DNA of 64,000 bases from Macrostomum hystrix (taxonomy: Eukaryota > Animalia > Platyhelminthes). Of this stretch, positions 9,917 to 63,400 are shown piece by piece (the stretch's first letter is position 1; each line of letters begins with the position of its first letter). The DNA is taken from positions 13,082,001 to 13,146,000 of the forward strand of contig CATNEN010000003.1 of NCBI GenBank assembly GCA_950097015.1. The letters run 5' to 3'. Below the pieces are notes generated by a model. It saw only the letters and a list, made by a program, of their open reading frames with translations. It searched no databases and was not told the DNA's origin. A program made the translations under genes and the position numbers.

Positions 9917-10147
9917 ACATTTGCCCTGATGTGCACACAGTCTACTCAGCCCCAATTCTGTGGGGTTTGGATGCTGCCGATATGTTTGGAAAAAATAAAT
10001 TCCATTGCTGACACGCGGCTGTCAACCGGTGTCCGAGAGAGCCGAGAGTACAATAGGTGTGCAGTCCCCACCTGCTAGTGTGCTTGACACACAACACCTG
10101 CACTGGCCCTTGGGTCTAGTGTCAAATTATTATTATAATTATTATTA
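9917..10147 (+). mobile_element. 5'-truncated, internally deleted copy of SINE family C
   Basis: Near-identical to 15577-15610 and 15681-15862; ends in an (ATT)n tail. Confidence 0.85.
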
Positions 10148-10739
10148 GTTAAACAGAAACAGAAACTGCATCGAACTTAAACTTGAACTGAATTTCCAGG
10201 AAAATGTGCAGAATAACAAACCTGCTTCGGCTTGCAGATTAATGTTGCGGTCGAGAGGTGCACTTCTCACGGATATTACAATTTGCTAGGCCGGCTTTTA
10301 ACTAGCAGTAATCTGCTAAGCCTTTGATCTGTAATGGAACTATTTTTATATTATTTCATTGCTGTCATAAATTACTATCCCATCCCTGTATCGCACGTAA
10401 ACGGCTGTGCCTGTACGATATACTCAGAATTGTCTGCATGATTTGTACATTAAAATGTCTCCTTCTATCCTTTCTCACAGAAAGCAAAGCACTGGTCGCG
10501 GATAATAATGCTTCTAAACTAAGCTTTTATACAAGCGCTAGTCTATACGTTGGAATGAGATCGGGAAGGCCAGAGTTGGCATTTTGCGTCTTCTCCGCAA
10601 TGTACATTGTGAGATCGAGTGAGCGCCTACTGAGTGTAAATTCTATATAGTTTTTAGCTGGAAGTGTAAATTTTTCTGACAGAAAGAAAGAATATTATGG
10701 TTCTATCCTTACAGCAGAGTTTTTCATTGAAAAAAGGAA

Positions 10740-13700
10740 ATGAAGCAACTCATTAAAACGCTAACAGTCGTCGCAACGTTTCTCATGAACAGTTTGCGGA
10801 TAGTAGTCAACGAATCCACAGACGAGTCAACGGACGAACCTACTTTGGATCATGAGCTGCTAGAGGCTGTAAAAACAGGTGATGTGCACAAGTTTGATAG
10901 CATAGCTACGGGAAATAATTATGTCGACAAGCTCATCCCGTTTATGGAAACTCACTTTACATTAGCTATGGTCGCTAGCTATTTTGGAAGAATTGAAATC
11001 CTAAAAAGGCTAATCAGTGCAGCCGTGGTACTTGATCAACAAAATGAGGCGGGTTGCAGCGCTATTTTCTATGCCTCACAGCAAGGTCATCATCAGGCAG
11101 TCAAGTTACTCATTGATGCACAAGCTGATGTTAATCTGCAAACAAAGACTGGTGAGTCCCCACTGTACAATGCATCGCGTGGTGGTCACAGTCAGGTCGT
11201 GGAGGCACTTATTCGAGCACAAGCCGACGTCGATATTTGTGAAACAGATGACTGCACAGCGTTGTACATAGCATCGCAGAATGGTCATTGCTTTGTGGCG
11301 GATGTACTCATCAAAGCACAAGCAAATGTCAATTGTCAAATGAACTCAGGCGAGTCGCCTATCTTTATAGCTTCACAAGAAGGTCACGATCAGATCGTTG
11401 ATTCACTAATAAAAGGGCAGTGCAATGTGAATCTGTTAGAAACAGAAGATAATTGTTCCCCATTGTACATGGCATCGCAGAATGGTAACAGTCAAATCGT
11501 CAAGGCACTAATAAATGCGCAAGCCAACGTTGATGAACAAAGAAGCCTAGGATTGTCGCCGCTTTATGTCGCATCACAAAATGGTCACCATGAAGTTGTC
11601 AATTCGCTTATTAAGGCTCAAGCGAGCGTTGATATGCAGAGACACAGTGGAGCATCGCCTCTTTACATTGCATCTCAAACTGGTCACCATCGAGTTGTTA
11701 GCTTATTAATTAAGGCGCGAGCCAATGTGGATCTTCAGCAAGTCTATGGCTTTTCACCGATCTACGCCGCATCTAAGGAAGGACATAGTCACGTGGTTGA
11801 GTTGCTCATTAACGCCCAAGCTGACGTCAATCTTCAGTCACACAATGGCCAGTCCCCTATCTTGATTGCGGCATGCAATGGCCACAGTCGAGTGATTGAA
11901 TTACTCGTCAAAGCACAGGCCGACGTTAATCTGGAACCAAATAACGGCGAGTCGCCTCTCTATATTGCATCGCTGCAAGGTCATCAGAAAGTGCTTGATT
12001 CGCTGATCAAAGCGCAAGCAGATGTCAATCTTCAAGAAAATGAAGGCTGTACACCCCTCTATATTGCGTCACAAAATGGCCATCGCCGCATTGTCGAATC
12101 GCTCATCAGAGCACAAGCCGACGTCAATCTTCAGAGACATTGTGGTTGGTCGCCATTGTACATAGCGGCATGCTACGGTCATCACCAGGTAGTTGATGCT
12201 CTCATTAAAGTGCAGGCAGAAATAAATTTTCGAGGAAAAGCAAGCTTATCACCTCTTCATATTGCATCGCAAAATGGTCACCTTCAAGTCGTCAAGTCAA
12301 TTATCGGTGCATGCTACATTGGAAGAGCTTCAAGGGAGTTTCTGCAGTCAGCTCTGATGCGCGCACAAGAATTCGGAGAGGATAGCGTAGTTCAGTTCCT
12401 GCAAGACGCACTTAACCAGTCCAAAGTTCAAATGGGGCCATCATGCTCTCAGCCAAACTGGTAAGTCATCATTATTTTAAAGATCGCTATTAATAATTAA
12501 TTGCACTTCAAATTATAATTAATCGGGCTATTGCGCGGCGCATCTGAAGGCTGCGTACCGCTGTTCAGTCCATGGACTGGTGGGACGCCACACCCACCCC
12601 TAATTACCCCAGCTAATGCTGGTACCCATTAAACAGCTGGGTGGATTGAATCAAGGCTGCGTTGAGTCTTGCATAAGGTCACAACATTTTCCAACGGAAA
12701 TCGAACCTCCAACCTCAAATCGAGAGTCCGACGCTCTAATCACTAGGCTACAAATTGTTTCTTCAATGATTCACTTTTATTTTCAGGGCCGCGATGAGCG
12801 ATACACAACTGAGTGAACAGCTTCACTTAGCGCTGAACAAATCTGGATTCACTGACTCCAGAGCCGCATTACAGAGCGCCGTGGCTGACGTCTTGCAGGA
12901 CGTTCTAAGAAAGAGACTAAGTTATGATAAGTACTTCGTGGTCGGCAGCTTCTCAGAGGGTTGGGGCAATAGTTTGGTCACTCTGGACGGCCTAACCGAC
13001 ATCAAGTCGGATATCGATGTGATGCTGCTGCTGCCAGGTGTGCCGTTTCATCTGAGGGATCTGTGCGAGTGCGGAGAACATGCGCAGCCCAACGCAACAG
13101 TTGGTTATAACAATGGCCATATCCTGTGCACTGGATTCAGTGAGTAGCTCAATAAATAATGATATTTTATTAGATTTTTAAGCGCATTATCAAGCGATAT
13201 AGTTGGCAGCCTCCAACTGCAATCCTTTGATTGCAGCCTCCAACCCAGCTAGATCAACGGACGGTACCAATTTGCGCCCGGCGGTTGATCAGGTTTCCGC
13301 TCGACGACTCTGCCGCTATCCTCCGATCGCACCGCTGCTACCTAACCGAATTGGCAGCTCCAAAATCCTCCAGTCCGTTCTGCAGTCGCTACAACAACAC
13401 CTCACCTCCGCCTCATCGCCCTGTCACGTGGTGCACGCAGCTCCTCCCGGATTGGCAGGCCAGCAGCTCCGGGTGAGCACCAGTTTCCTGGAGAGGCGAC
13501 TGTTGAGAAGTCTCAACACTATGCAGGGCCAGCTGTTCGTCACACTCAAGTGGCTGATAAAGAAGGCCATTCGCCACGATGGCTTCAAGTCCTACCACGC
13601 AAAGACCGTCACGTTCCGAATGCTGGAGGAGACACCGGCTGAGCAGTGGAGGCCGGAGAATCTCGTGAGCCTCACGAAACGCTCGCTGCAGATGCTGCTT

Positions 13701-14678
13701 AACGATGTGGAAATCAGTCTTCGGTCAGGCAGAGTTGATGGTCGTATCATGGAGCACTTCTTCCTGAGCGACGCCGCTGTGTACCTGAGAGGTGTAGATC
13801 CCAGATCAACTGAGAGCTTTTTGGAAGCCTTTAATCTTGCAGTTGGTGCGTTAAAAGACGTCATGGCTGAGCTGCCTCAGCTGCTGCTGCAGTTCGAGGA
13901 CAGTCTTCGACCCGTCACCGACTCGGGCCGTTTTCACTTCCACCCGTTCCTCATCCTGCCGATACTTGATATCAAACCAGTGTCTGAAGCCGAGATTTGC
14001 GAGTACCACGAGATCTACGACATTGTGAGAGAGTCCATCCTTCGGCTATCCGATGAATACTTCAACTCAGAGGACGTAGAATGTCTCACAGAGCTGATCG
14101 AAAAACTGCCAGACTGCGCCCGATCAGCGCGAGAGTCTCTCAGAGCGCTGGCCTGCCTGAAGTTCGGCGACCGACTCACTGCAGCGACAGTTGTGAGCGA
14201 CTGCGGACCGTTTAGTGCAAGCAGAGGCATCGATTGGGGAGCTGAGAGGCCGGCGAGTGACGCCACAACGGACTTTGTGTGGCAGCACCTGAGGAGCCGA
14301 GACTCCGCCTGGAAATTCTGCTTCTCGTTCGACACGAGACCAGAACTACCGACAGAGCATATCATACTGGCGGACAATTTTCCACTGCAGATGTACAACT
14401 ACACCAACTACTACTACATGAACTTCAGTGCCCTTCTCTATGGTCTACATTTCGAACTGTCTGAAGTAGTTGACTCGTACGCTCAGGACTGGATCCGGGA
14501 TGTGGCACACTGGGAGGATGCGGACAGACAGGAACTGATGGTGGCTGCACTGATCTCCACTGACCAGAACCTGCTGCAGCTACTGCGCAGGAGAATCTCT
14601 AGGCTCGTTGGCGATGTGCCCGATTGGCTCGACGTGAAGCTTGAAGACATTGTCTTAGATTCTCTATCAAAACAATAG
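10740..14678 (+). CDS. Ankyrin-repeat + Mab-21/cGAS-like nucleotidyltransferase (cGLR-type) fusion protein, ~1171 aa, 3 exons
   Basis: Exons 10740-12460 (donor tg|GTAAGT, phase 2), 12787-13139 (TTTTCAG acceptor; a|GTGAGT, phase 1) and 13237-14678; total 3516 nt in frame. 14 regular 33-aa ankyrin repeats plus caps. NTase motifs VVGSFSEG...SDIDVM and AVDQVSA. Mab-21 C-lobe [13 protein letters not shown]...LKWL...[10 protein letters not shown]...W...EHFF. The start codon is uncertain (an upstream exon is possible). Confidence 0.88.
12525..12752 (-). mobile_element. SINE family B copy in intron 1 of the ANK-cGLR gene
   Basis: Reverse complement of the body at 53570-53810 and 47810-48050, including the CAGTCCATGGACTG palindrome and a degenerate B-box (GTTCGATTTCC on -). 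Confidence 0.8.
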
Positions 14679-14764
14679 AAACCGATGAGGAGCCTGCTTT
14701 TTGCAAACAATGTCCTGAAATATCTTCGCTATAAATTCGCTATAAGTACGAATCTCCTGTTTCG

Positions 14765-14930
14765 ATGGCAGTGTACACCACTACGCCTTGGAGGTTGGCC
14801 CTCACCTCAGGGACGTAAATTGCACGACAAGCCTTCTTTCCGCGGCTGGGCCCCATGTGGCCTCGTCGCGGAATCGAGCTCAGGGACCTTAATGCGAGAG
14901 GCGAAAGCGTTAGCTCTGCCACTAACCCCG
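14765..14930 (-). mobile_element. SINE family A, 5' portion
   Basis: Matches 53140-53310; tRNA-like head on the - strand. Confidence 0.8.
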
Positions 14931-15472
14931 AATACAAGTATTAGCCGAGTTAGAAATTTGACACATGTTCGAATTCACTGCCTTTTGGAAGCTTTGTGAA
15001 ATATCTGCAGCTGAGTAGTATAGGTTTTATGTGAAATTTATATATTTTTTCTCTATTCCTGTCCACAATCCTATTCTTTTGTTGTTAGACACTTAGGCTC
15101 TGTGAAATATAAAATTTATTCCGAGAAACCAAGAGAATATGGTGAAATTAAAACCAGTTTTTTTGTACTTGCTTAATAGTTATTATTGCTGTGTTTATCA
15201 TTTTTATTGACTCATTCCAATTATTTTCTTCGTTCTCCTCTGCATTCGGCCAACGAAAGAAAACAATTAAAGAATAAGACGGATTTGCTGCAAATATATA
15301 TTCTTTAAAATAAAAAACTTAACCAACGCTATGTTATACATGTATGATGATATAAGTGATTATTTGCATACATAAACAAAAAAAATTTAGTATAAGTGAC
15401 TAGCAATTCAGACCCCCAGGCATTGAGTGGCGGCGATTGTTATTCAAGGCTAAGACACACGCGCATCATTCT

Positions 15473-15862
15473 AGGGCGGATAGCTCAGTCAGTAAGGTGT
15501 CGGACTCTGAATCAGATGGTCCTGGGTTCGACTCCCGACCTAGTCTAGAACTATTCGTGCAGCCTTTGGCAAGCTGCTTTGCCCTGATGTGCACACAGTC
15601 TACTCAGCTGCAAATGAGTACCGACATTTCGTCGGGTAATAATAATTCCGGCTGGCGTGGAATAAAGCAGTTCTGTGCGGCAATTCTGTGGGGTTTGGAT
15701 GCTGCCGATATGTTTGGAAAAAAATTCCATTTCTGACACGCGGCTGTCAACCGGTGTCCGAGAAAGCCGGGGAGTACATTAAGTGTGCAGCAGTACCCAC
15801 CTGCTAGTGTGCTTGACACACAACACCTGCAAGCTGGCCATTGGGTCTAGTGTCAATTATTA
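15473..15862 (+). mobile_element. Full-length tRNA-derived SINE (family C)
   Basis: Head GGCGGATAGCTCAGTCAGTAAGGTGTCGGACTCTGAATC...GGTTCGACTCC (A and B boxes), CORE-like middle (GGCAAG...CAGCTGCAAATGAGTAC), ATT tail and a possible TSD CATTCT (15467-15472 / 15863-15868). Second copy at 9917. Confidence 0.88.
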
Positions 15863-16839
15863 CATTCTCAGATTCTCAGATTATATATATTATCATTATT
15901 TTATTATCATTCTATGGCCTAAACGAGTCCCGAAATCACATCTCTTTTGTGCTTCTGCAAACCCTAAACCTTCGTGCATGGCCAAACTTTGAAGATAACT
16001 ATACGGGTCGCAATAAAACATGCAAGCGGTAGCAGATGTACATTTTACAGGGAGATGTAATGGTGGTTGTTGGTAAAGTTTGGTAAGGTAAGGTAAAGGT
16101 ATTGTTTATATGGAAGATTTATCATCGTGATGCCGTACTCAAAATAGTAGTATCTACAGTAACTAAGCAAGGAATAGAATTTTAAGAAGTTTCCATAAAT
16201 AGCAACAGAAATGAAGCAAAGAAAAGATTGAGATTGAAAAGAATTGAGAAGAAAAATAAGAGAGAATTATGTCGCCAGATTTCTCACGCCTCCAAGAGTT
16301 AATGAGCTGCATTCTGCAAATATCAAACAAAGTAAATATACTCTGTAAAACTTATGTTATCGAGTTACGAATGAATGAACAAAAGAAATGAAAAAAACTG
16401 AAATATGCGACTGAGCTACTATTTACTCTAATGTTTATAACTTTTAAGTTCATTATTCGAACTAATTGAAAACATCATTAACGACTTGGGATACGACGAT
16501 ACGGTAAAAAAGTAAAGTAAGCCATAAGATTTATAGGACATTCAGATAGGATTGGGAAACTCAAGCCCTCCGGCATTTGATTGAAGGGACTGTAGAACTG
16601 GAAAAGAAAACTTAATTAATTATTTACACCTGAGAGCGGGTTAAAATATTTCAGCTAAAATCCACATAAAAGACTTAGCAGATGACAAGAGTTTTTGAGT
16701 CAGAAAAGATGACGATAAAGTGGTAAAGTTAAGAAATGAGTAGATACAAATTGGAAGAATGGGAAAGAGGAATGATGAGAATTATGAGAAGATAAAACGA
16801 TGAGAATATGAGATGATAATGAAAGTAAGATAAGAATGA

Positions 16840-18410
16840 GGAGAAGATGGGAAGTGATGAGAAGATGAGAAGTGATGAGAAGATGGGAATGGATGAGAAG
16901 ATTGGAATTGATGAGAAGATGGGAATTGATGAGAAGATGAGAATTGATGAGAAGATGAGAATGGATGAGAAGATGAGAATTGATGAGAAGATGGGAATTG
17001 ATGAGAAGATGAGAATTGATGAGATGATGGGAATTGATGAGAAGATGAGAACTAATGAGAAGATGGGAATGGATGAGAAGATGGGAATCGATGAGAAGAT
17101 GAGAATGGATGAGAAGATGAGAATGGATGAGAAGATGAGAATGGATGAGAAGATGAGAATTGATGAGAAGATGAGAAGTGATGAGAAGATGGGAATGGAT
17201 GAGAAGATGAGAATTAATAAGAAGATGGGAAGTGATGAGAAGATTGGAATTGATGAGAAGATGGGAATTGATGAGAAGATGAGAATTGATGAGAAGATGA
17301 GAATGGATGAGAAGATGAGAATTGATGAGAAGATGGGAATTGATGAGAAGATGAGAATTGATGAGATGATGGGAATTGATGAGAAGATGAGAACTAATGA
17401 GAAGATGGGAATGGATGAGAAGATGGGAATCGATGAGAAGATGAGAATGGATGAGATGATGGGAATTGATGAGAAGATGAGAATTAATAAGAAGATGGGA
17501 AGTGATGAGAAGATTGGAATTGATGAGAAGATGGGAATTGATGAGAAGATGGGAATTGATGAGAAGATGAGAATTGATGAGATGATGGGAATTGATGAGA
17601 AGATGAGAACTAATGAGAAGATGGGAATGGATGAGAAGATGGGAATCGATGAGAAGATGAGAATGGATGAGAAGATGAGAATGGATGAGAAGATGAGAAT
17701 GGATGAGAAGATGAGAATTGATGAGAAGATGAGAAGTGATGAGAAGATGGGAATGGATGAGAAGATGAGAATTAATAAGAAGATGGGAAGTGATGAGAAG
17801 ATTGGAATTGATGAGAAGATGGGAATTGATGAGAAGATGGGAATTGATGAGAAGATGAGAATTGATGAGATGATGAGAACTAATGAGAAGATGGGAATGG
17901 ATGAGAAGATGGGAATCGATGAGAAGATGAGAATGGATGAGAAGATGAGAATGGATGAGAAGATGAGAATGGATGAGAAGATGGGAATGGATGAGAAGAT
18001 GGGAATGGATGAGAAGATGGGAATTGATGAGAAGATGAGAATGGATGAGAAGATGGGAATTGATGAGAAGATGAGAATGGATGAGAAGATGGGAATCGAT
18101 GAGAAGATGAGAATGGATGAGAAGATGGGAATTGATGAGAAGATGAGAATTGATGAGAAGATGGGAATTAATGAGAAGATGAGAATTGATGAGAAGATGG
18201 GAATCGATGAGAAGATGAGAATGGATGAGAAGATGAGAATGGATGAGAAGATGGGAATTGATGAGAAGATGAGAATGGATGAGAAGATGGGAATCGATGA
18301 GAAGATGAGAATGGATGAGAAGATGGGAATTGATGAGAAGATTGGAATTGATGAGAAGATGGGAATTAATGAGAAGATGAGAATTGATGAGAAGATGAAA
18401 AGTGATTAGA
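16840..18410. repeat. 18-bp purine-rich minisatellite (GATGAGAAGATGRGAATK)
   Basis: About 87 units with higher-order blocks; located upstream of the hillarin start codon. Confidence 0.97.
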
Positions 18411-19327: not shown

Positions 19328-22300
19328 ATGTTTCGTAGGGCAGCTTCATCTCAAGCAGCAACAGCAGCAACGCCAGCAACTGCAACAGGATTAGGTGGTG
19401 GCAATCTACATGAGTGCCAACGCTGCGGCAAAGCGGTTTATCCCACAGAGAAATTTGGTCCAATTAACGACGCCGTATTTCATAGAAACTGTTTCCGCTG
19501 TCAAACCTGCGGCATCTCCCTGAATGTCGGCAGCTACTGCGCCAATCCAGTAGACAGCAGCGATCGAGATGTTTACTGTGCTAGCCACAGACCACAGCTC
19601 AAAAACACTCAGATGGATATGGATGCGGTGAGATGCAGAAAAACAATAGACTTGTAAAATCTCTTCTAAATCCATACGTCCAGAATCTCGGGTGGGATTT
19701 TCTCTACAATTTTAAAGCCAAAGGTGAGATTTCTTTCGACAGCTTTAGAAACTAGGATGAGATTTCATTCGACATCTTCAGAGTCTAGGGTGAGATTTCA
19801 TTCGACATCTTCAGAATCTAGGGTGAGATTTCATTGGATATCTTCAGAATCTAGGGTGAGATTTCATTGGATATCTTCAGAATCTAGGGTGAGATTTCAT
19901 TGGATATCTTCAGAATCTAGGGTGAGATTTCATTGGATATCTTCAGAATCTAGGGTGAGATTTCATTGGATATCTTCAGAATCTAGGGTGAGATTTCATT
20001 CGACATCTTCAGAATCAAGGGTGAGATTTCATTGGATATCTTCAGAATCTAGGGTGAGATTTCATTCGACATCTTCAGAGTCTAGGGTGAGATTTCATTC
20101 GACATCTTCAGAATCTAGGGTGAGATTTCATTGGATATCTTCAGAATCTAGGGTGAGATTTCATTGGACATCTTCAGAATCTAGGGTGAAATTTCATTGG
20201 ATATCTTCAGAATCTAGGGTGAGATTTCATTGGATATCTTCAGAATCTAGGGTGAGATTTCATTGGATATCTTCAGAATCTAGGGTGAGATTTCATTGGA
20301 TATCTTCGGAATCTAGGGTGAGATTTCATTGGATATCTTCAGAATCTAGGGTGAGATTTCGTTCGACATCTTCAGAATCTAGGGTGAGATTTCATTGGAT
20401 ACCTTCAGGGTCTAGGGTGAGATTTCATTGGATATCTTCAGAATCTAGGGTGAGATGTCGTTCTATATCTTCAGAATTTAGGGTGAGATTTCGTTCTATA
20501 TCTTCAGAATCTAGGCTGAGATGTCGTTCTATATCTTCAGAATCTAGGGTGAGATTTCGTTCTATATCTTTAGAATCTAGGGTGAGATTTCATTCGACAT
20601 CTTCAGAATCTAGGATGAGATTTCATTGGATATCTTCTGAATCTAGGGTGAGATTTCGTTCGATACCTTCAGAATCTAGGATGAGATTTCATTGGATACC
20701 TTCAGAATCTAGGGTGAGATTTCATTGAATATCTTCAGAATCTAGGATGAGATTTCATTGGATATCTTCAGAATCTAGGGTGAGATTTTGTTCGACATCT
20801 TCAGAATCTAGGGTGAGATTTCATTGGATATCTTCAGAATCTAGAGTGAGATTTCATTGGATATCTTCAGAATCTAGGGTGAGATTTCATTCGACATCTT
20901 CAGAATCTAGGGTGAGATTTCATTGGATATCTTCAGAATCTAGGGTGAGATTTCATTGGATATCTTCAGAATCTAGGGTGAGATTTCATTCGACATCTTC
21001 AGAATCTAGGGTGAGATTTCATTGGATATCTTCAGAATCTAGGGTGAGATTTCATTCGACATCTTCAGAATCTAGGGTGAGATTTCATTGGATATCTTCA
21101 GAATCTAGGGTGAGATTTCATTCGACATCTTCAGAATCTAGGGTGAGATTTCGTTCTATATCTTCAGAATCTAGGGTGAGATGTCGTTCTATATCTTCAG
21201 AATCTAGGGTGAGATTTCGTTCTATATCTTTAGAATCTAGGGTGAGATTTCATTCGACATCTTCAGAATCTAGGATGAGATTTCGTTCGATACCTTCAGA
21301 ATCTAGGTTAAGATTTCGTTCGACATCTTCAGAATCAAGGGTGAGATTTCATTGGATATCTTCTGAATCTAGGGTGAGATTTCGTTCGATACCTTCAGAA
21401 TCTAGGATGAGATTTCATTGGATACCTTCAGAATCTAGGGTGAGATTTCATTGGATATCTTCAGAATCTAGGGTGAGAATTCATTGGATATCTTCAGAAT
21501 CTAGGGTGAGATTTCATTCGACATCTTCAGAATCAAGGGTGAGATTTCATTGGATATCTTCAGAATCTAGGGTGAGATTTCATTCGACATCTTCAGAGTC
21601 TAGGGTGAGATTTCATTCGACATCTTCAGAATCTAGGGTGAGATTTCATTGGATATCTTCAGAATCTAGGGTGAGATTTCATTGGACATCTTCAGAATCT
21701 AGGGTGAAATTTCATTGGATATCTTCAGAATCTAGGTGAGATTTCATTGGATATCTTCAGAATCTAGGGTGAGATTTCATTGGATATCTTCAGAATCTAG
21801 GGTGAGATGTCGTTCTATATCTTCAGAATCTAGGGTGAGATTTCGTTCGATATCTTCAGAATCTAGGGTGAGATGTCGTTCTATATCTTCAGAATCTAGG
21901 GTGAGATTGCGTTCGATATCGTTAGAATCTTCAGAATATAGTTTTTCGCTCCAATTAAATTACTTTATGAACTTATAAAAAACGAAAGCATAATTTTTCA
22001 GTCTCTAGTCAAAACATGAAAAAGTATGGACCACTCTCACTAAACTTAACGCCATGTGTCTAGAAATTTCGACGTCTAGGCATTTTTTATGAACACTTCA
22101 GTTTAAAAACTGTTTCTGTCTTAAACACAGCTGTCTGCTCGAAAACGCTGAATGTTGCTAAACTTCATTTTTCTCAGGAGAAGTAAAATTTCTTTACTTG
22201 ATTAACTTTTCCACTGTAAAAAAGTTTATAATTCACGTCTGTCAGTCAGCAGACAAACGCATCACGGAAAGCAGTCGCTCAAAACTATTTCTAGGAAAAA

Positions 22301-28300: not shown

Positions 28301-29893
28301 TTTCCTCCGCTACTCAAAACAGGCTTCTCAAAATCTGTCGGCTACGAACCTGGCATGCAGTTTCGTCAGGCCAACAAGTTCAAGAACACCTGGAACGCTG
28401 TGTTTGTTGAAGGCGAATGGCGCCTAATCCAGTGCAACTGGGCGGCCCGTCACCTGGTGTTCAATCGCACCACGGGCAGTGGTCAGGCTGCCAGTGACAA
28501 CACCAACACGACGGGCTCCACTGGCGGCGGCGTCACGGAGAATCTCCGCTATCACTACGACGAGCACTACTTCCTGACAGATCCGGATAAGTTCATCTAC
28601 GAATTCTTTCCGCAAGATCCCAGGTGGCAGCTGCTTGACCAGCCAATCAGTCTAGCCGAGTTTGAAGAGCTGCCGTTTGTTAGATCGGCCTTCTTCCAGT
28701 ACGGCATGCGGTTTCAGCCGAATACGAAAGCCGTAATAGAGACAGACTCGACTGGCGGTGCCATGCTGGAGCTCGGACTGAGTGACCCCACCCTGCCTCT
28801 GGTCTGTCATTATCAGTTTCGCTGCGCCGACACGGGAGCCGCTCATTACAAGGGCACCAAGCTGGATAGGCTAGTATTTTTCACCGTTCGGTCGCCAGGC
28901 AAACTAGTTTTCGACATTCACGTGCCAAATACGCAGCCGTATTTTCTAGAAATTTTCGCTGCCCTAGTTGAGCCGAACAATCCAGCGACGTACGGCTATC
29001 AGGTCAGGCTGAAATGCGTCGCCAAGTTCAAAGTGATTGCACGAGAGCTGCAGAAACGCATGACACCGCTGCCACAGTCAAGTAGCAGCACAGGCGAGTG
29101 GGGCCCATCAAAGGCCATGCGTCATTTTCTCATTCAGCCCAGGAGCCACACGACAGCTATAATAAGCTTCGACGGCCGCCTTAGTAAAGAGCTAAACATG
29201 AATTTCGAAATACCGCCCAGCATCCTTAACGAGAGCTCAGCTTTCTCGGTCGTCGTGAACAGGAATGGCGTCGCGCCTCAGGTGCTGTCAAGATACGCTC
29301 GAGTGCAACTTGACAAGCAACGCAGCTTGCTCTTTGTTCGCTTCCAGCCGCCCGAGTCGGGATCCTACGCTCTGGAAATCTTTCTAGAGCGAAAGAACAG
29401 CCCGCCGACCCATGTCTGCAAGTACCTGGTGCGTTGCGTCGAAATCAAGCCAGACGCAGCCATGTCGCTGTCCAGACCAGCTGTCCCAGACGAGTACAAG
29501 GCCAAGTCCGGACCAAACCAGCCAGTGTTGAAGCGACTACCCATTGCGTACGTCTCGGATGTTCCTTACAAGTCGTCCGTGGACACCAAGTCTGTTTCTT
29601 TAAAGTTCAAATTTTCTGACGAGCAGCTCGAGTATATCACATCGCTGAGTCGCCTGCCCGAAGGTAAGGGCAAGCAGCATCAGCTGGCCGCATCTGTGGA
29701 AGACCATTCTGACAATTGTGAGCTTCGAATTGTCAATCAGAAGGCCACGGTGATTGCCCACTTTGTAACTGACGGGCGCTACAATTTGCACCTGCTAGCT
29801 CGAAGGCCTCAGCCAGATGCTCAGTTCGAGCTGTGCTACAGCTTTAAGCTGGATGTCACCCTGCCGAAGGTTTTGCAACCAACGACAGCTTGA
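19328..29893 (+). CDS. Hil: Hillarin-like LIM domain + coiled coil + transglutaminase-like (KY/Cyk3-type) protein, ~1054 aa, 5 coding exons
   Basis: Exons 19328-19627, 24208-24420 (missed by the ORF track), 26026-26457, 26901-27549, 28323-29893; total 3165 nt in frame. LIM CQRCGKAVYPTE...FHRNCFRCQTC...YCASH, coiled coil, then KVRAIFRWITVK...GTETYHVLFMRLCSYAG...IKGFSKSVGYEPG...NTWNAV...YDEHYFLTDP. Confidence 0.9.
19745..21930. repeat. 33-bp minisatellite in hillarin intron 1
   Basis: TCTAGGGTGAGATTTCATTGGATATCTTCAGAA, about 66 units. Confidence 0.97.
22500..22990. mobile_element. Palindromic non-autonomous element (MITE-like; class uncertain)
   Basis: 103-bp near-perfect hairpin at 22562-22664, plus dispersed inverted CGTTAGAYGCACG / CGTGCGTCTAACG motifs at ~22524, ~22778 and ~22948. 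Confidence 0.5.
23795..24090 (-). mobile_element. SINE family A copy in hillarin intron 1
   Basis: Matches 48850-49140 and 53030-53300. Confidence 0.85.
24470..25780. repeat. 23-bp minisatellite in hillarin intron 2
   Basis: AGAGATGGGACTCAATGAGGATC units with a 552-bp (24-unit) higher-order duplication. Confidence 0.97.
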
Positions 29894-33051: not shown

Positions 33052-35519
33052 ATGACGAGAGAAAACGAAAGGTACAACCAACTCAAACAAGCTATTCTGA
33101 CAGGCAACGACACTGACTTAAAACGCATTTTAGAAGGCATAGAACGTCAAATTTTCACTAGTGACAATTTTGAAGCCAAGCGCATACTATTAGCTGCCGC
33201 AAGCGACAAGGAAGGTCTGTCTGTACTGAAGCGGTTAATTGATCAGGTGGGAGCCGAAGCGCTTCTACTAACGGACGATGAAGGCAACAGTGTGTTACAC
33301 AAAGCCGCGGTAAACCAAAATTCCGATTCAATGGTTTACTTTGAGCAAATAATGGCATTGAAGACTGACGCAAGATTCTCGTTTGAAGTAAAAAATAAGA
33401 ACAGCTGTTCAGTAGCGCACTTCGCTGCAACCAACAAATTCTGCAACAGCGCACTAACCTGGTTAGTGAACAAACTGGGACCAGAGTGCCTAGATCAACT
33501 CCCTGACAATGACAACGATATAGTGATCATGCTATATAGCAACATAGCCGCTTGCTTTTAAACAGCCGAAACGATGCAGTTTATCAAGGAGAAGATGAAC
33601 GGATCAATCGATTGTTTTAAATGGCGAGGATCCGAGTTCAACTCGACGGTGGCCCATTTTGCTGCCATGAATGCAGTCACTAACTCCACCCTGAAATGGA
33701 TTGTTAAAGAACTCGGACCCGACTGCCTACTTGATCGGGATGAGCAAAAAGAGACAGTTGTCCACAATGTTGCCATTTATCAGACAGTGGACTCTCTGGA
33801 ATTCATCAAGGAGCAACTGCACGGGGTGGAGTGTTTCACAATCAGAGGAGTTTATAATCGAACATCTGTGCACCACGCCGCAATCAATGAAACACAGAGT
33901 CCACTGCTGCAATGGCTTGTGAGTGAATTAGGGCCCCAGTGCCTCACGATCATGGATGCCGAAAACGACACGCCGATTCACCTTGCCGCAAAGTATCAAG
34001 ACGCGTCGGTGTTTCAATTCATCAAGGAGCAGCTAGGCGGCATTGAGTGCTTCTATCCCAAGGGGTCCAAGAATTTCTCTGTGGCACATTACGCAGCCAG
34101 CAATGAGCGCACCTGCTCCATCCTGAAGTGGCTAGTCAGGGAGCTTGGGCCGGAGTGTCTGTTTGAACGAGATGACGACGGAGACACGGTGATTCACAAG
34201 GCTGCCTCGTATCAGGAAGAGGAAGCCATGCAGTTCGTTTATGACACTTTAGAGGACATGGCGTGCTTTAAAATGAAATCAGGATCCACAGGAATGACAG
34301 TCGTGCACTATGCTGCTAGCAATAAGCGTAGCGATTCAGCAATAAAATGGCTGGTGAACAAACTCGGGCCGGATTGCCTAACCCTTCGAGACTCTGAGAA
34401 CAGCACGGTCCTTCACTTTTTAAGCATGCACCAAAAGGCCGAGACTTAGCAATTCGTCAAAGAGAAGATGAAGATGAGTCCAGTGCTTCAGACTCACTAG
34501 TGAGACCAATAAGACCACCGCGCACACAGCCGCAATGAACAAAAGCAGCAGTTCCGCTCTGGAGTGGCTAGTGGACGAGCTCGGGCCCGACTGCCTGACC
34601 GAAAGAGACTCAAAAAATGACACAGTTCTCCACATAGCCGCTCAATTTCAAAATGCAGAAACAATGACACTTATTTTTAGAAAGTTGCGCGGAGACACCA
34701 GCCGCTTTAGGATGAACGGGTGGAGAGGAATGACGGTAGCGCACAGCGCAGCGACAAATCGCAGCGACATCAGCTTTGGAATGGATAGTAGACGAATTAG
34801 GCCCCGACTGTCTCCTAGAGAGAGACGCTGACAACGACTCGGTAATTCACATAGCGTCGAGTTATCAAAGCAAAGAGGTCATGAAGTTTATCGAGCAGAA
34901 AATTCAAGGAGCATAGTGCTTCAGGATGCGAGGAGCGAACAATACGACATCGGTGCATCGCGCTGCAACCAATGAAGTTGACAGTTCAACAATAATCTAT
35001 TTGGTTGAGAGGCTTGGAAAAGATTGCCTAACGGAGAGAGACAGTGGCAACAATACACCGGTGCACCTGGCGGCAGAGTACCAGAAATCTAAAGTCATGG
35101 AGGTAATAAAAGAAACAATGAAAGGAATCATTAGCTTCAAGCTGAAAGGACTGCGAGGCAGGACAGTGACCCACTATGCAGCGAGGAATAAAGTCAGTAC
35201 AGAGCCGCTCGAGTGGCTGGTGGAGGAGCTAGGACCCGACTGTCTAGCAGAGAAAGACGCCAAGGGTAATTCGGTAGTGCACGCAGCGGCCCGCTACCAA
35301 ACTTCGGTAACTCTTCAGTCTATCAAGGACAAGCTGAACAGCGTCGAGTGCTTTAAGGAGCCTGGTAAAGATTCTTTGACACCTGTGCACTACGCCGCCA
35401 AGAATACAATCAGCAGCTCAAATATTGAATGGCTGGTTAACAAACTGGGGCCAGAATGCCTAACAGAGCGCCGAGACTGTTCGTCGACTGCAGTATTTGC
35501 TCAGATTGCCCAACCCTGA
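33052..35519 (+). pseudogene. Disrupted ankyrin-repeat gene built from ~72-aa double-ankyrin units
   Basis: About 10 units with WLVxELGPxCL...D..N.T.xH.AA periodicity (~216 nt). Lesions: insertion/frameshift at ~33530-33561, TAG 34447-34449, frameshifts at ~34475 and ~34770, TAG 34914-34916, and an abrupt end of similarity at ~35475. Confidence 0.82.
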
Positions 35520-36597: not shown

Positions 36598-38681
36598 TTA
36601 CCAATACCGCCGCCCATACTTGATCGCGTGCGGTGTTAAAAATCGTTCAACGTTGCAAAGATTGTTTTTGCGTACAAAATCAAAGTCAAACGGATTAACG
36701 TTCTCATCCGTTACATATCGATCATAGCGCTCTTCAAAATCCAGCATTTCCTGTGAGACGAATCGACTTTTGAATGGCAAATAGCCGGCCATCTGTTTGA
36801 GCATGCGGTAGGCTTCTTGCCATTCTAGATTGCCTCCCAATTCTAGAATGATTCGTTCATCTTTAACTGGCGACTTGTAGAATTTCGGATCGCGCTTACC
36901 TCCGCCCAGTGTTAACCCGGGCGGGCGCTTATAGCCAGCCATCCAGGGAGCGTCCACTCGCCAGATGGCAAACATTCGGTCTTGGTCCAGCTTCCGGTTT
37001 AACGACATGCGCACGGTTTCAAAGTGACAGTGCAGCATCACGCCCGCTTCTAGGGCCTGTTGGGGATCAGGGATGGTGGTAGAAGTTCCATTTTCATCAC
37101 AATAACCCATTGGATAACCTTGGATAACACATTAGATGACTAATTGAATTTTTTAGGGGCTCGGGTTTGTATAGAATTTTCTTGTTAGCTGCAAATAACT
37201 GTTTGACTTGAGTTGTCTTTCTACAATTTCTTGGTGCATCTATTATCTCTGCGCTGTTTGTTTTACTCACTTCAGTGCAGACAATATTTCAGAACTCAAG
37301 ATATGGTAACCATATCTGTAACTTCCCATAGCCGTATCCGTAGCTACGGCTGAACTCTAATGACAAGGAGAAAATCGAAAAGTTGTGTGACTGCAGCTAC
37401 TGTGCTGGCATCCGGAGTCTGCGTACAGCTGTTGTTTAGTCCATGGACTGTGAGGGGACACCTAACCAAAAATTCAACTCCAGCTAACGATTGAGCTACT
37501 CATTTCGTAACTGTGTGAACTGTCAAGTGTCTTTGCTCAAGGAAAGAAGACTATAACTAATAACCTATCAGACAGGGGATAGAATATGACAGTTGACAAA
37601 GACAACATTTTTCTATAATCTAAACACAAAGTATCACTAAGAACATACTCCGACGTGTCGCTGTTTTTAACATAATACTAATTAACCGTATATCCTTGAC
37701 TATAGAAGAAGCATTTACAAGTACTACAAGCCAAAGCGTCGTCTTTCGTAACCACGAGCGTAGCTACCAGACATTTTGCTAGTAGACACTGGACTGTACA
37801 GTCAGTATATCTTATGACGACATTGTGAAAACTATATTAAAATAGTTAATGTATACTTTATGACTTTATGTATATAAACTGATAAACTAAACTAAGTGGC
37901 GAGCAAACGTGAACTGGAAGGGCAGCAAAGCAAATATGCTTACTCGTTGATAATAATCGCAAAAGAAGGTAAAACTAGAAATGAAACTGATTACACCGTT
38001 TTTGTATGTACATGTAAATTGCATGCATGTACTTTTAGCTGCTGGTTTCTTAATGTGCATTTTGTCACAAAGTCGCTAATGTCACTAAGGGTAGATTAAA
38101 ACTAGAGCTTCGTAAGTTCGCACTCCTAACCGACAGGTCATTGGTTCGATTCATAGCCTGTTGCAAACAATAGTACCTGCCCTAGTGCTGAAGTTCAACC
38201 AGCTGTAAAATATTTACTAGCATTATATTAGATACAAAGTTAAGATTGGTGTGTATATACACCCCAGTCCATGAACTGAAAAGCTTATTATTAACGAGCA
38301 AAATAAATAGCGGGACGCATTTCATTAAGCACGCGAGGAAAATCTTACCTGCACTCCAAACTGTCGATGAATGAGCTTATTGTGAACCAATTCTGGTCCG
38401 CGAAAGATGGATCTACTACCAGTGTAGTGCCATTTAGTGCCAATGGTCACTAAAGTGGGTGACGGCACCTTTGGTCGCGTTGGAAGTCGTCTCTGATCAC
38501 GAGGAACCTCAGCTTCGGTCAGAGCTGGTTTTGGCTGCCAATTGACTCGCCATTGCCAAAGGTGTGGCGCCGCCAAGCTGCGAACTGGTTGGCTCGTGTT
38601 AATGATCACAGGTGCAAATGAGCACGACTGCAGCTTAATTAATGCCGGCAGTGCCGGTACGCTGCGAAATGCACTACTCAT
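36598..38681 (-). CDS. MRPL16: Mitochondrial ribosomal protein L16 (uL16m), ~263 aa, 2 exons
   Basis: Exons 38681-38349 (CAG|GTAAG) and 37056-36598. Motifs RGPELVHNKLIHRQFG, HFETVR, RMFAIWRVDAPW, GGGK, PVK..RIILELGG; basic, acid-free N terminus like a mitochondrial presequence. AATAAA at 36571-36566. Confidence 0.92.
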
Positions 38682-47578: not shown

Positions 47579-50500
47579 ATGCTAGTAAGTACTTTTTTAT
47601 TTTGTTTTTAAAAAAAATATTGATACTTGCCCTATTGATTGCTATTGGATTTGGAATTAGCTACTCTGTAATTGATCTAACTTTATTTATTTTCTTTATA
47701 TCTTTCGGCACATCATAAATAAGCGCTGTTTCATAGCTTAACTTAAGTATTCATTTATTTAGCTTTACGCCTTGTAGCCTTGTAGCCTTGTAGCCTTGTA
47801 GAGAGGTTGTAGCCTAGAGAGGGCGTCGCACTCACGACTTGAAGGTCGGGGGTTCGATTCCCGACACCACTGAAACAATATGTGTCCTTTAGCAAGAAAC
47901 TTAACTCTCCATTGCTTCAGTTCACCCAGCTGTTAAATGGGTACCAGCATTAGCTGGAATAATTGAAGGTTGGTGTGGCGTTCCCCTAGTCCATGGACTG
48001 AACAGTTGTAGGCCTAGGCCTACGTAGTCTTCATATGCGCCGCGCAATAGCTGTGGGCTGTGGCTGTGCTGCTAGCTGCACATCTGACCCGATTGGGGCA
48101 GGTGTAATCATTTATTCTTTTTTTTAGGCCTTGCATAGCCTAGCTATGCAAAATTCTTCTATTATATGGCACAGTTAACTACCATCTCACAGTTAGGCCT
48201 GCTTATCCTGACACTTAAGACTACATTTGTTTGCTGGTAGCTGTTACAAATTTGTGTGGATATTTTTTTTAATGGTGTACATAGATCTTTTGCCTTCTAT
48301 GCAATGTAGATATGTACAAGCTGTTTATTAGGAAGATTGGATACCACAAAATTGTGCCTTGTGCATCATTGACTTCATATGTCACTTAAGTGTACAGTTC
48401 AATATGTTTCTGAGTGTTGCCCTAGTATTTTCATATGGATAATTTTTATGCTAGGCTTTGTTCAGGCATAAGCACAAACTGAATTCATATATAAATCGCT
48501 CTTTAAATATCTACCAAACCTGTGAGAGATATAAGTATAAACTAAAAAATTTCTAGCATTATATAGCATATAACCCCCTTCCACAATATGGCAAGCTGGA
48601 TTTTTAGAATAATTTTGTTCATTTAGATATAAAGACTAAGCACTACATTTTTGGGTAAGCTGATGTCTGATGATATGCATTGCCAATAATATCTAGGTAA
48701 ATTTAGTACAGATCAACATTTGTAAAACTGCATGAATTAACAGATTTTAATTTTACTCTAGTCTATTCTAGCTTGATTATGATAATAATAATAACAATAA
48801 TTGCAGGAGGGCTGCGGGCAATGACACATAGTTTGGTGACACTAGACCCACAGCCAGCAAGGAGGCAATTCTGCCCATTTTGCTGACTCCTGAGCACACA
48901 CACACACAGATACAGTACGCAGGCATATGCTCACACAGGTGTGTACATCTGCCCTGACTTTCTCATCATCAGGCAGTGTACATTTCACTGTGCCTTGGAG
49001 GTTGGCCCTCAAAGGCGTAAATTGCATGACAAGCCCCTAAAGCCATCTCTCCGCGGCTGCACCCCAAATAAATGTGGCCTCGCCATGGAATCAAACTTAG
49101 GGTCTGTGGTGCGAGAGGCAAACGCGTTAACCGCTCTGCCACCGACCCCCTTGCTTGATTATGATATTAATAATGATAATAATCACTTCTTCAATCGCCA
49201 GGAAGAAGTTGATCATCAAGTTGACCTATCCGATAGTCCAAATGATGGCGCTGCGGCTTCCAATTCTGTTGGCAAAGAGCAACGCTCAGACACAGTGGAT
49301 CTCAGCGGGAACTCCGATCTCAGAGTAGACATATCCGATGCTCTCAGTGAGAAGGAGCGCGTTAAATTCACTGTGCGAACAGTTACCACGCTGGTGCCGC
49401 GTTTTGCTCAACCCGACTTCTCAGTAGTTCGCACCCACGAAGAATTCGTCTGGCTAGCTGATCGCCTAGCCGAGAATGTTGATTATGCCGGCTTCATCAT
49501 TCCGCCGGTGCCACCGACGCCAGATTTTTCTACTTCTCGCGAGAAACTGGCCAGACTGGGCGACGGCGAGGGTTCAATGACTAGGGAGGAATATGACAAG
49601 ATGAAGTCAGAATTGGAAGCGTAAGTTACTGAACTATTTTACTGACTATTTTATTAGTTCGGAGTTGTCAACAGACTAGAAAAGTTCTAGACTAGACTAA
49701 GCTCTGCGTTAGCGTGTCTATAGTCGCCTATTTACACCTGTTGTACCCCTTGAAGGTCCAGCAGTCTGTCTAGATAAAATTAGGTGACCACCGAAGACGG
49801 AGATGATGCAGGCACATTCGGGTGACTGGCTGAAATGCAGATAATGTTGAAGGCCTGGCAATGTGCTAATTCGTGTAGTGTATGAAATACACTAGCGCTT
49901 ATGGTACAAACCAGACCTTCGGCCAGAACTGATAAATATCTCGATGATTCTGGCGGCTTGATTCTTGTTTCAAAAGATGCGCAACAAAAAGTTGGCCCGT
50001 GTTCTTTAGTTTCGTGTTCTTGCGTTGCTCCGTTCGGGTGCAACAAATGAACATATCTAATGAACATATCTAATAAACATAATGTCTTTTAGATCCCAGT
50101 TGAAACATCAGTTTTAAGCTTAAATATTTCGCGTTTTTTATTATTATAAAAAATATTAATTAGTTTACATTGTTACTGTTTTACAAAACACGCTGATTAA
50201 ATTGCGTGCAAGGTTTTTAGGGCCTTTATATTGATCATGCAATAGACTGTAATTCAAGAAGTCAATGGGAAAGAAGGTGAGCTAATTTATGCCTAAGTTG
50301 GTAAGTGTGCTTACCTTAACTTTTTTAGTCTAATGGCTACAGTTTCATGGGTAGTTACCGTCTCTTTATAGCCTGCCTGTATAATCTTCAGCGTTATCAG
50401 TTTTAACCTGAAACTTGGCTTTGTATGCTTAACTGAGGCTACAGTGTGTTAGGTGTCTTGGTCTCTTACTTTGACTATTTGAAAATCTGTTTAAAGTTGA

Positions 50501-61770: not shown

Positions 61771-62254
61771 GTCCTTCTTCTCTATTTTCTCTCTAGCTCC
61801 CCCCATAGTAAAACTACACTTAAATTGGTGCTTTATAAAAATTCTCTGGTTTAATTTACTCGTAATTCTATGGACTTTGTGTTTTAGGCTGTATGTTATC
61901 AATTTTCTGCTGACAAACTTTCATTTTGAATTTTCGTTAGCTAGTTTTTTACTCATTAAAATGCAATTAATTTAGTAAACAAAAACTGCATTTTAAATAA
62001 TATTTTTTATTACTTTCAGTTCATTGAATAATACTTAACTAGTAAAACGACTGCATTTGAAATGTGTAACTCGTTAGAGCCATATTTTTTCTAACTTATG
62101 AAACAAGCGCTAATTTTTAATCCAACATTCATTAATTAACTATGACGGTTTGAAATTTTATGAAAAATTGCCCACTTTCGAAAAAAACTTTACCTTCTAT
62201 CAAGACTTTTGCTCGTTATTATTTTCCTGTGCCCTTTTAGCTGTACTTCTACAC

Positions 62255-63400
62255 CTCTCTACCCTACCTGTCCCTTCTCTACCCTACCTGTCCCCTATCT
62301 ACCCTACCTGTCTCTTCTCTACCCTACCTGTCCCCTATCTACCCTACCTGTCTCCTCTCTACCCTACCTGTCTCCTCTCTACCCTACCTGTCTCCTCTCT
62401 ACCCTACCTGTCCCCTATATACCCTACCTATCTCCTCTCTACCCTACCTGTCCCTTCTCTACCCTACCTGTCTCTTCTCTACCCTACCTGTCTCCTCTCT
62501 ACCCTACCTGTCTCCTCTCTACCCTAACTGTCCCCTATCTACCCTACCTGTCTCCTCTCTACCCTACCTGTCTCCTCTCTACCCTACCTGTCCCCTATAT
62601 ACCCTACCTATCTCCTCTCTACCCTACCTGTCCCTTCTCTACCCTACCTGTCCCCTATATACCCTACCTGTCTCTTCTCTACCCTACCTGTCCCCTATCT
62701 ACCCTACCTGTCTCTTCTCTACCCTACCTGTCTCCTCTCTACCCTACCTGTCTCCTCTCTACCCTACCTGTCTCCTTTCTACCCTACCTGTCTCCTCTCT
62801 ACCCTACCTGTCTCCTCTCTACCCTACCTGTCCCTTCTCTACCCTACCTGTCCCCTATATACCCTACCTGTCTCTTCTCTACCCTACCTGTCCCTTCTCT
62901 ACCCTACCTGTCCCCTATCTACCCTACCTGTCCCCTATCTACCCTACCTGTCTCTTCTCTACCCTACCTGTCTCCTCTCTACCCTACCTGTCTCCTCTCT
63001 ACCCTACCTGTCTCCTCTCTACCCTACCTGTCTCCTCTCTACCCTACCTGCCTCCTCTCTACCCTACCTGTCCCCTATATACCCTACCTGTCCCTTCTCT
63101 ACCCTACCTGTCTCCTCTCTACCCTACCTGTCTCCTCTCTACCCTACCTGTCTCCTCTCTACCCTACCTGTCTCCTCTCTACCCTACCTGTCTCCTCTCT
63201 ACCTTACCTGTCTCCTCTCTACCATACCTGTCTCCTCTCTACCCTACCTGTCTCCTCTCTACCCTACCTGTCTCCTCTCTACCATACCTGTCTCCTCTCT
63301 ACCCTACCTGTCTCCTCTCTACCTTACCTGTCTCCTCTCTACCATACCTGTCTCCTCTCTACCCTACCTGTCTCCTCTCTACTCCACCTGTCTACCCTTT
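62255..63400. repeat. 20-bp pyrimidine-rich minisatellite
   Basis: ACCCTACCTGTCTCCTCTCT, about 56 units. Confidence 0.97.

Follow-up and report, generated by a model that had tools for sequence, protein, structure and literature searches.

The genome of the flatworm Macrostomum hystrix contains, in a stretch of 64,000 nucleotides which we call the window (positions 13,082,001 to 13,146,000 of contig CATNEN010000003.1, assembly GCA_950097015.1), a gene that combines a long series of ankyrin repeats with an enzyme domain of the cGAS type. This gene, at positions 10740-14678 of the window, is expressed and consists of three exons, in which an ankyrin array is fused to a cGAS-like (Mab-21/cGLR) nucleotidyltransferase (NTase; cGLR, cGAS-like receptor). 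An earlier note, made from the letters of the window, had recognised three open reading frames (ORFs) here and joined them on paper into one candidate receptor. The parts of the gene are the following (P0008 is a relative from Macrostomum lignano, treated below):

10695..10739, + strand: 5' untranslated end; transcript contigs start at 10695-10737, none is spliced upstream, and the ATG at 10740 is the first start of the frame
10740..12460, + strand: exon 1, coding for a short hydrophobic N-terminus, the ankyrin array and a linker (ORF, donor site and joint in four runs)
10851..12374, + strand: ankyrin array of ~14-15 repeats, bounds approximate (Pfam Ank_2 and Ank; 33-residue register)
12461..12786, + strand: intron 1, 326 nucleotides, GT..AG, skipped in contigs of all four runs
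12787..13139, + strand: exon 2, N-terminal lobe of the NTase (spine helix, GS loop, DxD strand, H/C/C/H insert), 61% identical to residues 1-100 of P0008
13140..13236, + strand: intron 2, 97 nucleotides, GT..AG, skipped in contigs of all four runs, its position kept in paralogues
13237..14678, + strand: exon 3 with the stop codon, comprising the remainder of the NTase core, the Mab-21 C-lobe and a C-terminal helical domain (ORF; matches of relatives)
13986..14675, + strand: family-specific C-terminal domain (230 residues) made of helices and a small sheet (AlphaFold of this stretch of the window)
14679..14884, + strand: 3' untranslated region; contigs covering 14295-14884 in runs X1 and X4 extend ~200 nucleotides beyond the stop

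Structure and expression of the gene

The three ORFs are present in the ORF listing just as the earlier note had them, all on the + strand, with 574 amino acids (10740-12464), 117 amino acids (12794-13147) and 491 amino acids (13203-14678). At the first junction a donor GTAAGT begins at 12461 and an acceptor AG lies at 12785-12786; exon 2 starts at 12787, completing a tryptophan codon (TG/G), and the reading frame continues into the ATG-ORF of 12794. Similarly, the second junction has a donor GTGAGT from 13140 and an acceptor AG at 13235-13236, after which exon 3 starts at 13237 within a threonine codon (A/CC) and continues in frame into the 491-residue ORF. The coding parts of 1721, 353 and 1439 nucleotides add up to 3513 nucleotides, i.e. 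1171 codons.

Transcript data were available from four public runs of a single study, whose assembled contigs (42-50 Mb in each run, library kind unrecorded) were aligned to positions 10000-15500 of the window. Contigs of all four runs contain both joints, free of mismatches and with canonical GT..AG borders, placed by the alignments at 12459 to 12786 (GT..AG with the cut moved by +1) and 13139 to 13237 (GT..AG). One contig of 2296 nucleotides (run X3, record 16) extends over 10721-12459, 12786-13139 and 13237-13439, and because it spans all three exons the ankyrin exon and the enzyme exons lie on one molecule. The phase-matched GT-AG junctions at 12460/12787 and 13139/13237, deduced beforehand from the letters, are seen in transcripts, the interval 12460-12787 being spanned in four runs, and they support the single protein of ~1171 residues. 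Exon 3 has only one 100%-identical copy in the genome and the next copy is 73% identical; given this sole identical copy, the intron-less contigs would be RNA of the 10740-14678 locus itself. A retrocopy origin of the spliced contigs was rejected, no second near-identical copy being present in the genome. Exon depth is ~7-10 in the contigs of the four runs. No contig of these low-depth runs covers 13806-14294, a stretch that forms one open frame and is homologous to relatives throughout.

Two peculiarities of the transcript data were observed besides. A contig of run X4 (record 21) follows both joints and then, after ~13450, shows 23 differences and 2 indels at a higher depth of 43 (13440-13669); a chimera formed with a paralogue during assembly, or else a divergent allele, is the probable cause. 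Within intron 1, an element at ~12527-12596 is accompanied by a depth of 280-1900 over 12392-12759 and by many loose contig ends, and is probably a dispersed transcribed repeat. By eye it resembles a tRNA-derived repeat; searches for tRNAs (ARAGORN) and for Rfam families found none in the window, the intron 1 repeat included.

The ankyrin part of exon 1 is recognised by Pfam far above the curated cut-offs, with 509.9 bits for Ank_2 (cut-off 27.3) and 285.1 bits for Ank over 13 stretches. Twelve canonical 33-residue repeats follow one another from residue 105 and one more lies at residue 502, flanked by degenerate N- and C-terminal caps. The 13 Pfam stretches and the ~14-15 repeats counted in the 33-residue register agree well with the 14 repeats previously reported, and tandem 33-residue repeats above a curated Pfam cut-off are what characterises an ankyrin protein. 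The N-terminus ahead of the array (10740-10850) contains a moderately hydrophobic stretch and resembles the start of the M. lignano relative P0006, AFFQSIAVVFMQASLIQQSTDEPTD; it could be a membrane-associating or signal-like segment.

The nucleotidyltransferase core and its predicted fold

Exons 2 and 3 contain the sequence elements expected of a cGAS-type catalytic core:

12944..12949, + strand: Gly-Ser of the activation loop (GSFSEG), aligned with the GS of mollusc Mab-21 proteins
13010..13018, + strand: Asp-Ile-Asp, the first two metal-binding carboxylates, aligned with SDxD of the mollusc family
13287..13289, + strand: third catalytic Asp (AVDQV), 55 residues past DIDV, at the invariant D of the mollusc motif D-x-V-x-A
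13572..13766, + strand: Mab-21 C-lobe signature (SYHAKT ... W ... HFF), from a sub-threshold Pfam Mab-21_C match and the family profile against PDB sequences

The motifs GS(F)xEG, D-I-D, AVDQV with its Asp, SYHAKT and HFF had all been read correctly by the earlier note; the full GSFSEG motif occupies 12944-12961 in exon 2. Taken together, the active site reads VVGS - 20 residues - DIDV - 55 residues - VDQ. Criteria for assigning proteins to the cGLRs have been formulated by Li et al. (2023, PMC9980059) and comprise a motif, homology that covers the NTase core as well as the C-terminal helix bundle, and predicted structural homology; the strict motif is h[QT]GS X8-20 [DE]h[DE]h X50-90 h[DE]h, the relaxed one G[S/G] + [E/D]h[E/D] X50-90 [E/D]. 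All catalytic residues and spacings of the window gene fit the relaxed form.

Homology extends over both lobes. Indeed, an alignment of the family in which both window exons are included matches a 50-sequence alignment of mollusc Mab-21 proteins with an hhalign probability of 99.9% (E 5.4e-33, 293 columns); the aligned part begins at the spine helix, runs through the whole C-lobe and has GS, SDxD and DxVxA matched column by column. The mollusc profile in turn finds solved cGLR1 (8gjy, E 1.2e-34), cGAS (~1e-21), MB21D2 (4.5e-18) and Mab21L1 (5e-14) among PDB sequences, and its invariant Asp is aligned on the VDL of 8gjy. With the profile of the flatworm family, cGLR1 8gjy (E 1.3e-4) and cGAS (0.015) are reached over the C-lobe stretch only, and a single-sequence search reaches cGAS/cGLR1 likewise in the C-lobe only (E 0.045). 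A Pfam match of the exon pieces to MTPAP was dismissed as being at chance level.

Fold prediction for the core was based on P0008, an M. lignano gene model of 598 residues devoid of ankyrin repeats, which is the closest contiguous relative (61% identical to exon 2 and 52% to exon 3 of the window gene). It is continuous across the position of intron 2, reading ILCSGFATNPAK where the window has ILCTGF/(T)SNPAR (the slash marking the exon border), and the exon 2 and exon 3 pieces of the window abut colinearly on it (ILCTGF/(T)SNPARSTDG against ILCSGFATNPAKPFRG). The AlphaFold model of P0008, computed with a 67-row alignment, has a predicted local distance difference test (pLDDT) of 92.3 and a predicted template modelling score (pTM) of 0.91. 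All Foldseek matches listed for this model are cGAS or cGLR (best E 1.7e-8), and VIA superimposes it on mouse cGAS 4k9b with Z 18.9 (root-mean-square deviation 3.5 Å, 258 aligned, residues 6-319), on oyster Cv-cGLR1 (8gjw) with Z 18.6 and on MB21D2 (7lt1) with Z 17.7. A comparison of AlphaFold models with cGAS and cGLR structures, as suggested at the outset, thus gives a match to both for the relative's model, and the structural homology that the cGLR definition calls for is found on it.

The part of the P0008 model equivalent to exon 2 consists of a helix (4-32) and two strands (37-40 and 63-75). G41/S42, the equivalents of the window's GS and at least 90% conserved in the family, follow strand 37-40; D63 and D65 stand at the start of strand 63-75, and D121 is part of strand 119-128. 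In NTases of the Pol-beta type the GS loop and the acidic residues are arranged on strands in just this way. In the model, and at the level of strands, the three acidic residues are predicted on those expected of a Pol-beta-type NTase. Between the DxD strand and the strand of the third Asp, exon 2 also contains an H-x4-C-x-C-x13-15-H pattern (13049-13120), formed by His88, Cys93, Cys95 and His111 of the piece 12788-13138 (H76, C81, C83 and H97 of P0008) and conserved in 85-95% of 55-59 family sequences. This insert could be a zinc site, placed elsewhere than the zinc thumb of cGAS.

The C-terminal domain was modelled from the window itself (13986-14675 alone), with pLDDT 94.5, pTM 0.91, ~11 helices and a small sheet. 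Foldseek returned nothing for it at E <= 0.001 and the ESM Atlas no match at >=0.9; VIA gave a best Z of 8.6, the generic TPR-like or solenoid rows (6.4-8.6) being too low to be informative for helical repeats. An identity as TPR repeats was rejected on the grounds that Pfam finds no TPR match, hhalign against the TPR region of the mollusc proteins gives 0.6%, and VIA and Foldseek are negative. Because pTM is 0.91 for P0008 as a whole, the models suggest that this domain packs firmly on the core.

Relatives, a candidate receptor and neighbouring features

A genome search for paralogues, which the earlier note had recommended, was productive. In the assembly searched (220 Mb, 42 contigs) exon 3 has at least 92 matches, most of them intact and many clustered on contigs C3 and C18; this number is a lower bound because 89 of 176 candidates were scored. 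Twenty loci were fetched for a census together with 7 kb upstream, and in 17 of them ankyrin DNA lies on the same strand upstream of exon 2. The paralogues retain the build of three exons and have intron 2 in the same place, while the number of canonical ankyrin repeats ranges from 3 to 39 per locus. Identity between the window gene and paralogues rises from 46-58% in the ankyrin exon to 61-67% in exon 2 and 70-74% in exon 3.

Catalytic acidic positions are kept in nearly all of the 20 paralogues, and the same three positions are kept in M. lignano relatives down to ~30% identity, which argues for selection on catalysis. As to the exceptions, the third acidic position is changed from Asp to Asn (PAVNYF) in loci L008 and L029 and is Glu in L020 and L041; for example, L029 (G000:C3:11166281-11175005) reads PAVNYF together with SDSDV, and L041 (G000:C11:3665669-3674378) reads PTVEHV. 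Judged from such sequences, a part of the family may be without catalytic activity or have an altered one. Among 283 repeats of the ankyrin arrays the framework positions are nearly invariant, and entropy, greatest at positions 5 and 3, also peaks at 1, 17, 2, 21, 13 and 14 in designed-ankyrin numbering. Positions 2, 3, 5, 13 and 14 of designed ankyrin proteins constitute their canonical binding face, and the entropy pattern would be compatible with a role of the ankyrin array in recognition.

A full HMMER scan with exon 3 yielded 175 proteins at E <= 0.001, 81 of them at E <= 1e-10. The stronger matches, where looked up, all come from M. lignano, are mostly 1100-1200 residues long and carry names such as hypothetical, ANK_REP_REGION or Mab-21-like domain-containing protein. 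Four of them with 1100-1200 amino acids (P0002, P0003, P0006 and P0011) match residues 1-469 of exon 3 at 52-67% identity. N-terminal ankyrin repeats were found in all seven M. lignano relatives scanned and a weak Mab-21_C match in six of the seven; the three-exon build recurs in M. lignano gene models. Further down, the weak matches are mollusc proteins in which Mab-21 and Mab-21_C are accompanied by TPR repeats at the C-terminus. One M. lignano protein, P0065 (PAA59752.1, 1099 amino acids), is related to the cGLR-like domain over residues 147-554 (E 4e-24) and is named 'Caspase family p20 domain-containing' in its source; by this name, the protein would join a caspase to a cGLR-like domain.

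The genome was searched for STING homologues as well, as the earlier note had suggested, and this brought up one divergent STING_LBD-like ORF below the Pfam cut-off. It lies on the minus strand at G000:C2:9104529-9105040 (L021:1000-2010), and its stop-to-stop frame matches profile positions 3-145 of 182 with 25 bits (E 1.4e-5, cut-off 27). The ORF begins with FAWNFAFTFLRLILPKL and holds the motif FLRLILPKL. All 14 of its weak PDB matches are STING, with coral STING (8efn) and oyster TIR-STING (6wt6) at the top; homologues did not turn up in a word-based search, Pfam has no match when the ORF is taken from its first start codon, and no transmembrane exons were identified upstream. On its sequence this ORF makes it plausible that the genome encodes a STING-like receptor.

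The remaining features of the window are the following:

19724-21739: two tandem ORFs with a START_2-like match
28355-29893: ORF with a KY-like Ig domain (E 2e-42)
33052-35519, + strand: three ORFs with ankyrin repeats (Ank_2, E 1e-7 to 1e-29)
36598-37110, - strand: ribosomal protein L10e/L16
40545-41834: RNase H / RVT_3 ORF in a stretch of 58% GC, probably a retroelement
48941-49624: PX-domain piece
59288-60115: MCM-binding protein

The ORFs at 33052-35519 probably belong to another ankyrin gene, distinct from the one at 10740-14678; their surroundings hold no cGLR-like exon, and the genome search with exon 3 gives one match in the window. The window also displays very strong local GC skew (-0.65 in 1-2000, +0.71 in 16001-18000, +0.35 to +0.49 in 56001-60000 and -0.63 in 62001-64000), which suggests strand-biased simple or satellite-like repeats.

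Function, rival explanations and known systems

Li et al. (2023, PMC9980059) reported that some cGLRs carry TPR or ankyrin modules and showed ankyrin fusions as an architecture class (Fig. 1C and S2A); they counted more than 200 cGLRs in some bivalves and found none, besides Mab21-like proteins, in nematodes and most platyhelminths. Their screen used double-stranded DNA and poly I:C as ligands, and the accessible part of their Table S3 (nos. 89-91 and following) lists M. lignano proteins, counted by these authors among the cGLRs, that were cloned as constructs starting at the NTase domain. The connection of the present family to that work rests on one of these, PAA45980.1 (no. 90); the M. lignano proteins closest in sequence were not traced by accession in the accessible part of the supplementary tables, and our literature search found no further paper on Macrostomum cGLRs. 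The ankyrin-cGLR architecture, on whose rarity the earlier note had taken no position, is not rare: it was catalogued in 2023 and is the norm for the family of at least 92 loci described here.

On balance we think it fairly probable that the gene encodes a cytosolic protein of the cGLR family with 1171 residues, a putative ligand-gated synthase of a nucleotide signal to which the ankyrin array gives specificity. That the enzyme is active is likewise rather probable, and the role of the array is less certain than the activity. The cGAS-type core would be inactive by default and, once switched on, would make a nucleotide second messenger from nucleoside triphosphates, probably a cyclic di- or oligonucleotide. 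The ankyrin array, the variable part, would bind an activating ligand or partner and thereby release or organise the enzyme, and the signal would be read by one of the divergent STING-like proteins of the genome. The observations described above establish the structure of the gene and its transcription, the identity of the domains, the family's fold and size, and the conservation of the catalytic residues. What we infer here is enzymatic activity, the nature of the product, the ankyrin role, the receptor and a role in immunity. The description as a candidate cGLR with an intact GS/DxD/D set, from which the earlier note had started, is carried by the splicing, the hhalign match of 99.9%, the relative's model (Z 18.9) and the strand placement of the acidic residues.

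Several observations weigh against this interpretation. Compared with the strict cGLR motif the active site has two flanking deviations (VVGS instead of h[QT]GS and V-D-Q instead of h-D-h). Of the Pfam families named by the earlier note, Ank_2 is found at 509.9 bits as said above; Mab-21_C is detected in exon 3 only below its threshold (E 1.5e-3, 19.1 bits, cut-off 24.1), and the Mab-21 NTase model has no match on the exon pieces of the window. The fold was taken from P0008, a relative of 52-61% identity, and not from the joined protein of the window, and the places of the Asp residues were read from it at the level of strands. Variable surface positions are common to ankyrin proteins generally, and the STING-like ORF stays below its cut-off. 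Finally, the 15 active enzymes of Li et al. come from insects, anemones, molluscs, hydras and corals and include no flatworm (PMC9980059), and no activity is known for any member of the present family, several M. lignano members of which appear in the accessible part of that paper as cloned. The absence of flatworms from the active enzymes may only reflect a lack of the ligand, or of the ankyrin part, in what was screened.

Alternatively, the protein could be an active cGLR whose core itself binds nucleic acid, as in cGAS and Drosophila cGLR1, with the ankyrin array serving for localisation, oligomerisation, autoinhibition or recruitment. The core is indeed mildly basic (isoelectric point 8.3 when the exon 2 piece is combined with residues 1-240 of exon 3; 9.0 for the P0008 core), nucleic-acid-sensing cGLRs have isoelectric points above 8.5 (PMC9980059), and the known cGLR ligands are all double-stranded nucleic acids. 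We nevertheless regard this alternative as unlikely, since M. lignano constructs starting at the NTase were, according to the accessible part of the source, screened with double-stranded DNA and poly I:C while flatworms are missing from the phyla that yielded the 15 active enzymes (PMC9980059), and since the ankyrin part is the fastest-diverging and most length-variable portion of the family, as one would expect of a recognition module more readily than of a tether. Less probable still is a non-enzymatic scaffold of the Mab-21 type, in which the cGAS-like domain would bind a ligand or oligomerise and signal through protein contacts, as proposed for Mab21L1 or MiD51. It would agree with the lack of demonstrated activity in the family, with the caspase p20 fusion of P0065, an indication that some members signal directly through proteins, and with the loss of the third Asp in a few paralogues (PAVNYF in L008/L029). 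Without selection on catalysis, however, the retention of GS, DxD and the third Asp in the window gene, in almost all of the 20 paralogues and in the M. lignano relatives would be unexpected, and Mab21L1/2/3, unlike the window gene, have no predicted functional active site (PMC9980059).

We attach only a small probability to the idea that the core is another kind of active nucleotidyltransferase, for instance an enzyme that makes linear 2'-5' oligonucleotides in the manner of OAS, or a modifier that transfers nucleotides, or that its role lies outside immunity. All of the Pol-beta NTase superfamily shares the GS/DxD/D set, and no product, ligand or infection phenotype is known; yet among the matches listed Foldseek and VIA give cGAS, cGLR(1) and MB21D2 and neither OAS nor poly(A) polymerase, and the nearest relatives outside flatworms are the mollusc Mab-21/TPR proteins, whose best match is cGLR1. 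That the joined gene is an artefact of separate ORFs, a pseudogene or a mis-assembly is very improbable: 13806-14294 lacks coverage and the runs, of unrecorded kind, provide contigs only, but the joints are exact and canonical in four runs, one contig crosses all three exons, the frame is open throughout, and the three-exon build is repeated in paralogues and in M. lignano gene models.

Beyond the ligand-gated synthase favoured here for the window gene itself, a more speculative proposal, which we put forward tentatively and with clearly less confidence, concerns the family as a whole. Although most of its phylum is said to lack cGLR-STING signalling through loss, Macrostomum may possess a large and diversifying repertoire of ligand-specific arrays of variable length that sense targets other than nucleic acids, probably proteins. 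Each array would switch on its own enzyme, and the nucleotide signal of that enzyme would be read by the divergent STING-like proteins of the worm; the window gene would be an expressed, catalytically intact member. The targets of orphan cGLRs are an open question, and because a variable protein-binding solenoid is here joined to the enzyme, the ankyrin-cGLR family is a natural place to seek a cGLR that senses something else. A single gene adds little beyond the catalogued family; the window gene is convenient for full-length cloning because it has a transcript-supported model, an intact motif, short introns and a moderate number of repeats. Macrostomum is experimentally tractable, RNA interference and transgenesis being established in M. 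lignano.

The window gene is a further member of the already catalogued ankyrin-cGLR class. Its counterpart in that catalogue, M. lignano PAA45980.1, has the same domain order of ankyrin repeats followed by the cGLR core, belongs to the P0040 cluster (Ank and Mab-21_C, exon 3 matched at E 7.7e-47) and shares the motifs GSxxxxWG, SDxD, LRVSTxxLER, LKxYHxKT and HFF. It is, however, only 32% identical to the window gene; the public proteins nearest to the latter, at 52-67% identity, are uncharacterised gene models from M. lignano. With cGAS (4k9b) and oyster Cv-cGLR1 (8gjw) the P0008 model shares the whole catalytic fold over ~255-260 aligned residues, including the GS loop, two Asp on one strand and the third on a neighbouring strand, and the family shares the Mab-21 C-lobe signature. 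Identity to these enzymes is 15-22%, and the window core is shorter, with 55 residues between DxD and the third Asp; the window gene differs furthermore in its extra ankyrin array, its 230-residue C-terminal domain and the conserved H/C/C/H insert before the third Asp. Outside the flatworms, the family has its nearest relatives in mollusc Mab-21/TPR proteins such as Mercenaria XP_053407825.1 (P0100), P0085 and P0110, which also fuse a repeat domain to a cGLR core. Their repeats are TPRs at the C-terminus, whereas those of the flatworm family are ankyrins at the N-terminus, and the flatworm C-terminal domain has no homology to the TPR part (hhalign probability 0.6%). Human MB21D2 and Mab21L1, finally, have the same fold (MB21D2 7lt1, Z 17.7) without ankyrin repeats, and Mab21L1 is without a predicted functional active site (PMC9980059), whereas the motif is kept in the window gene.

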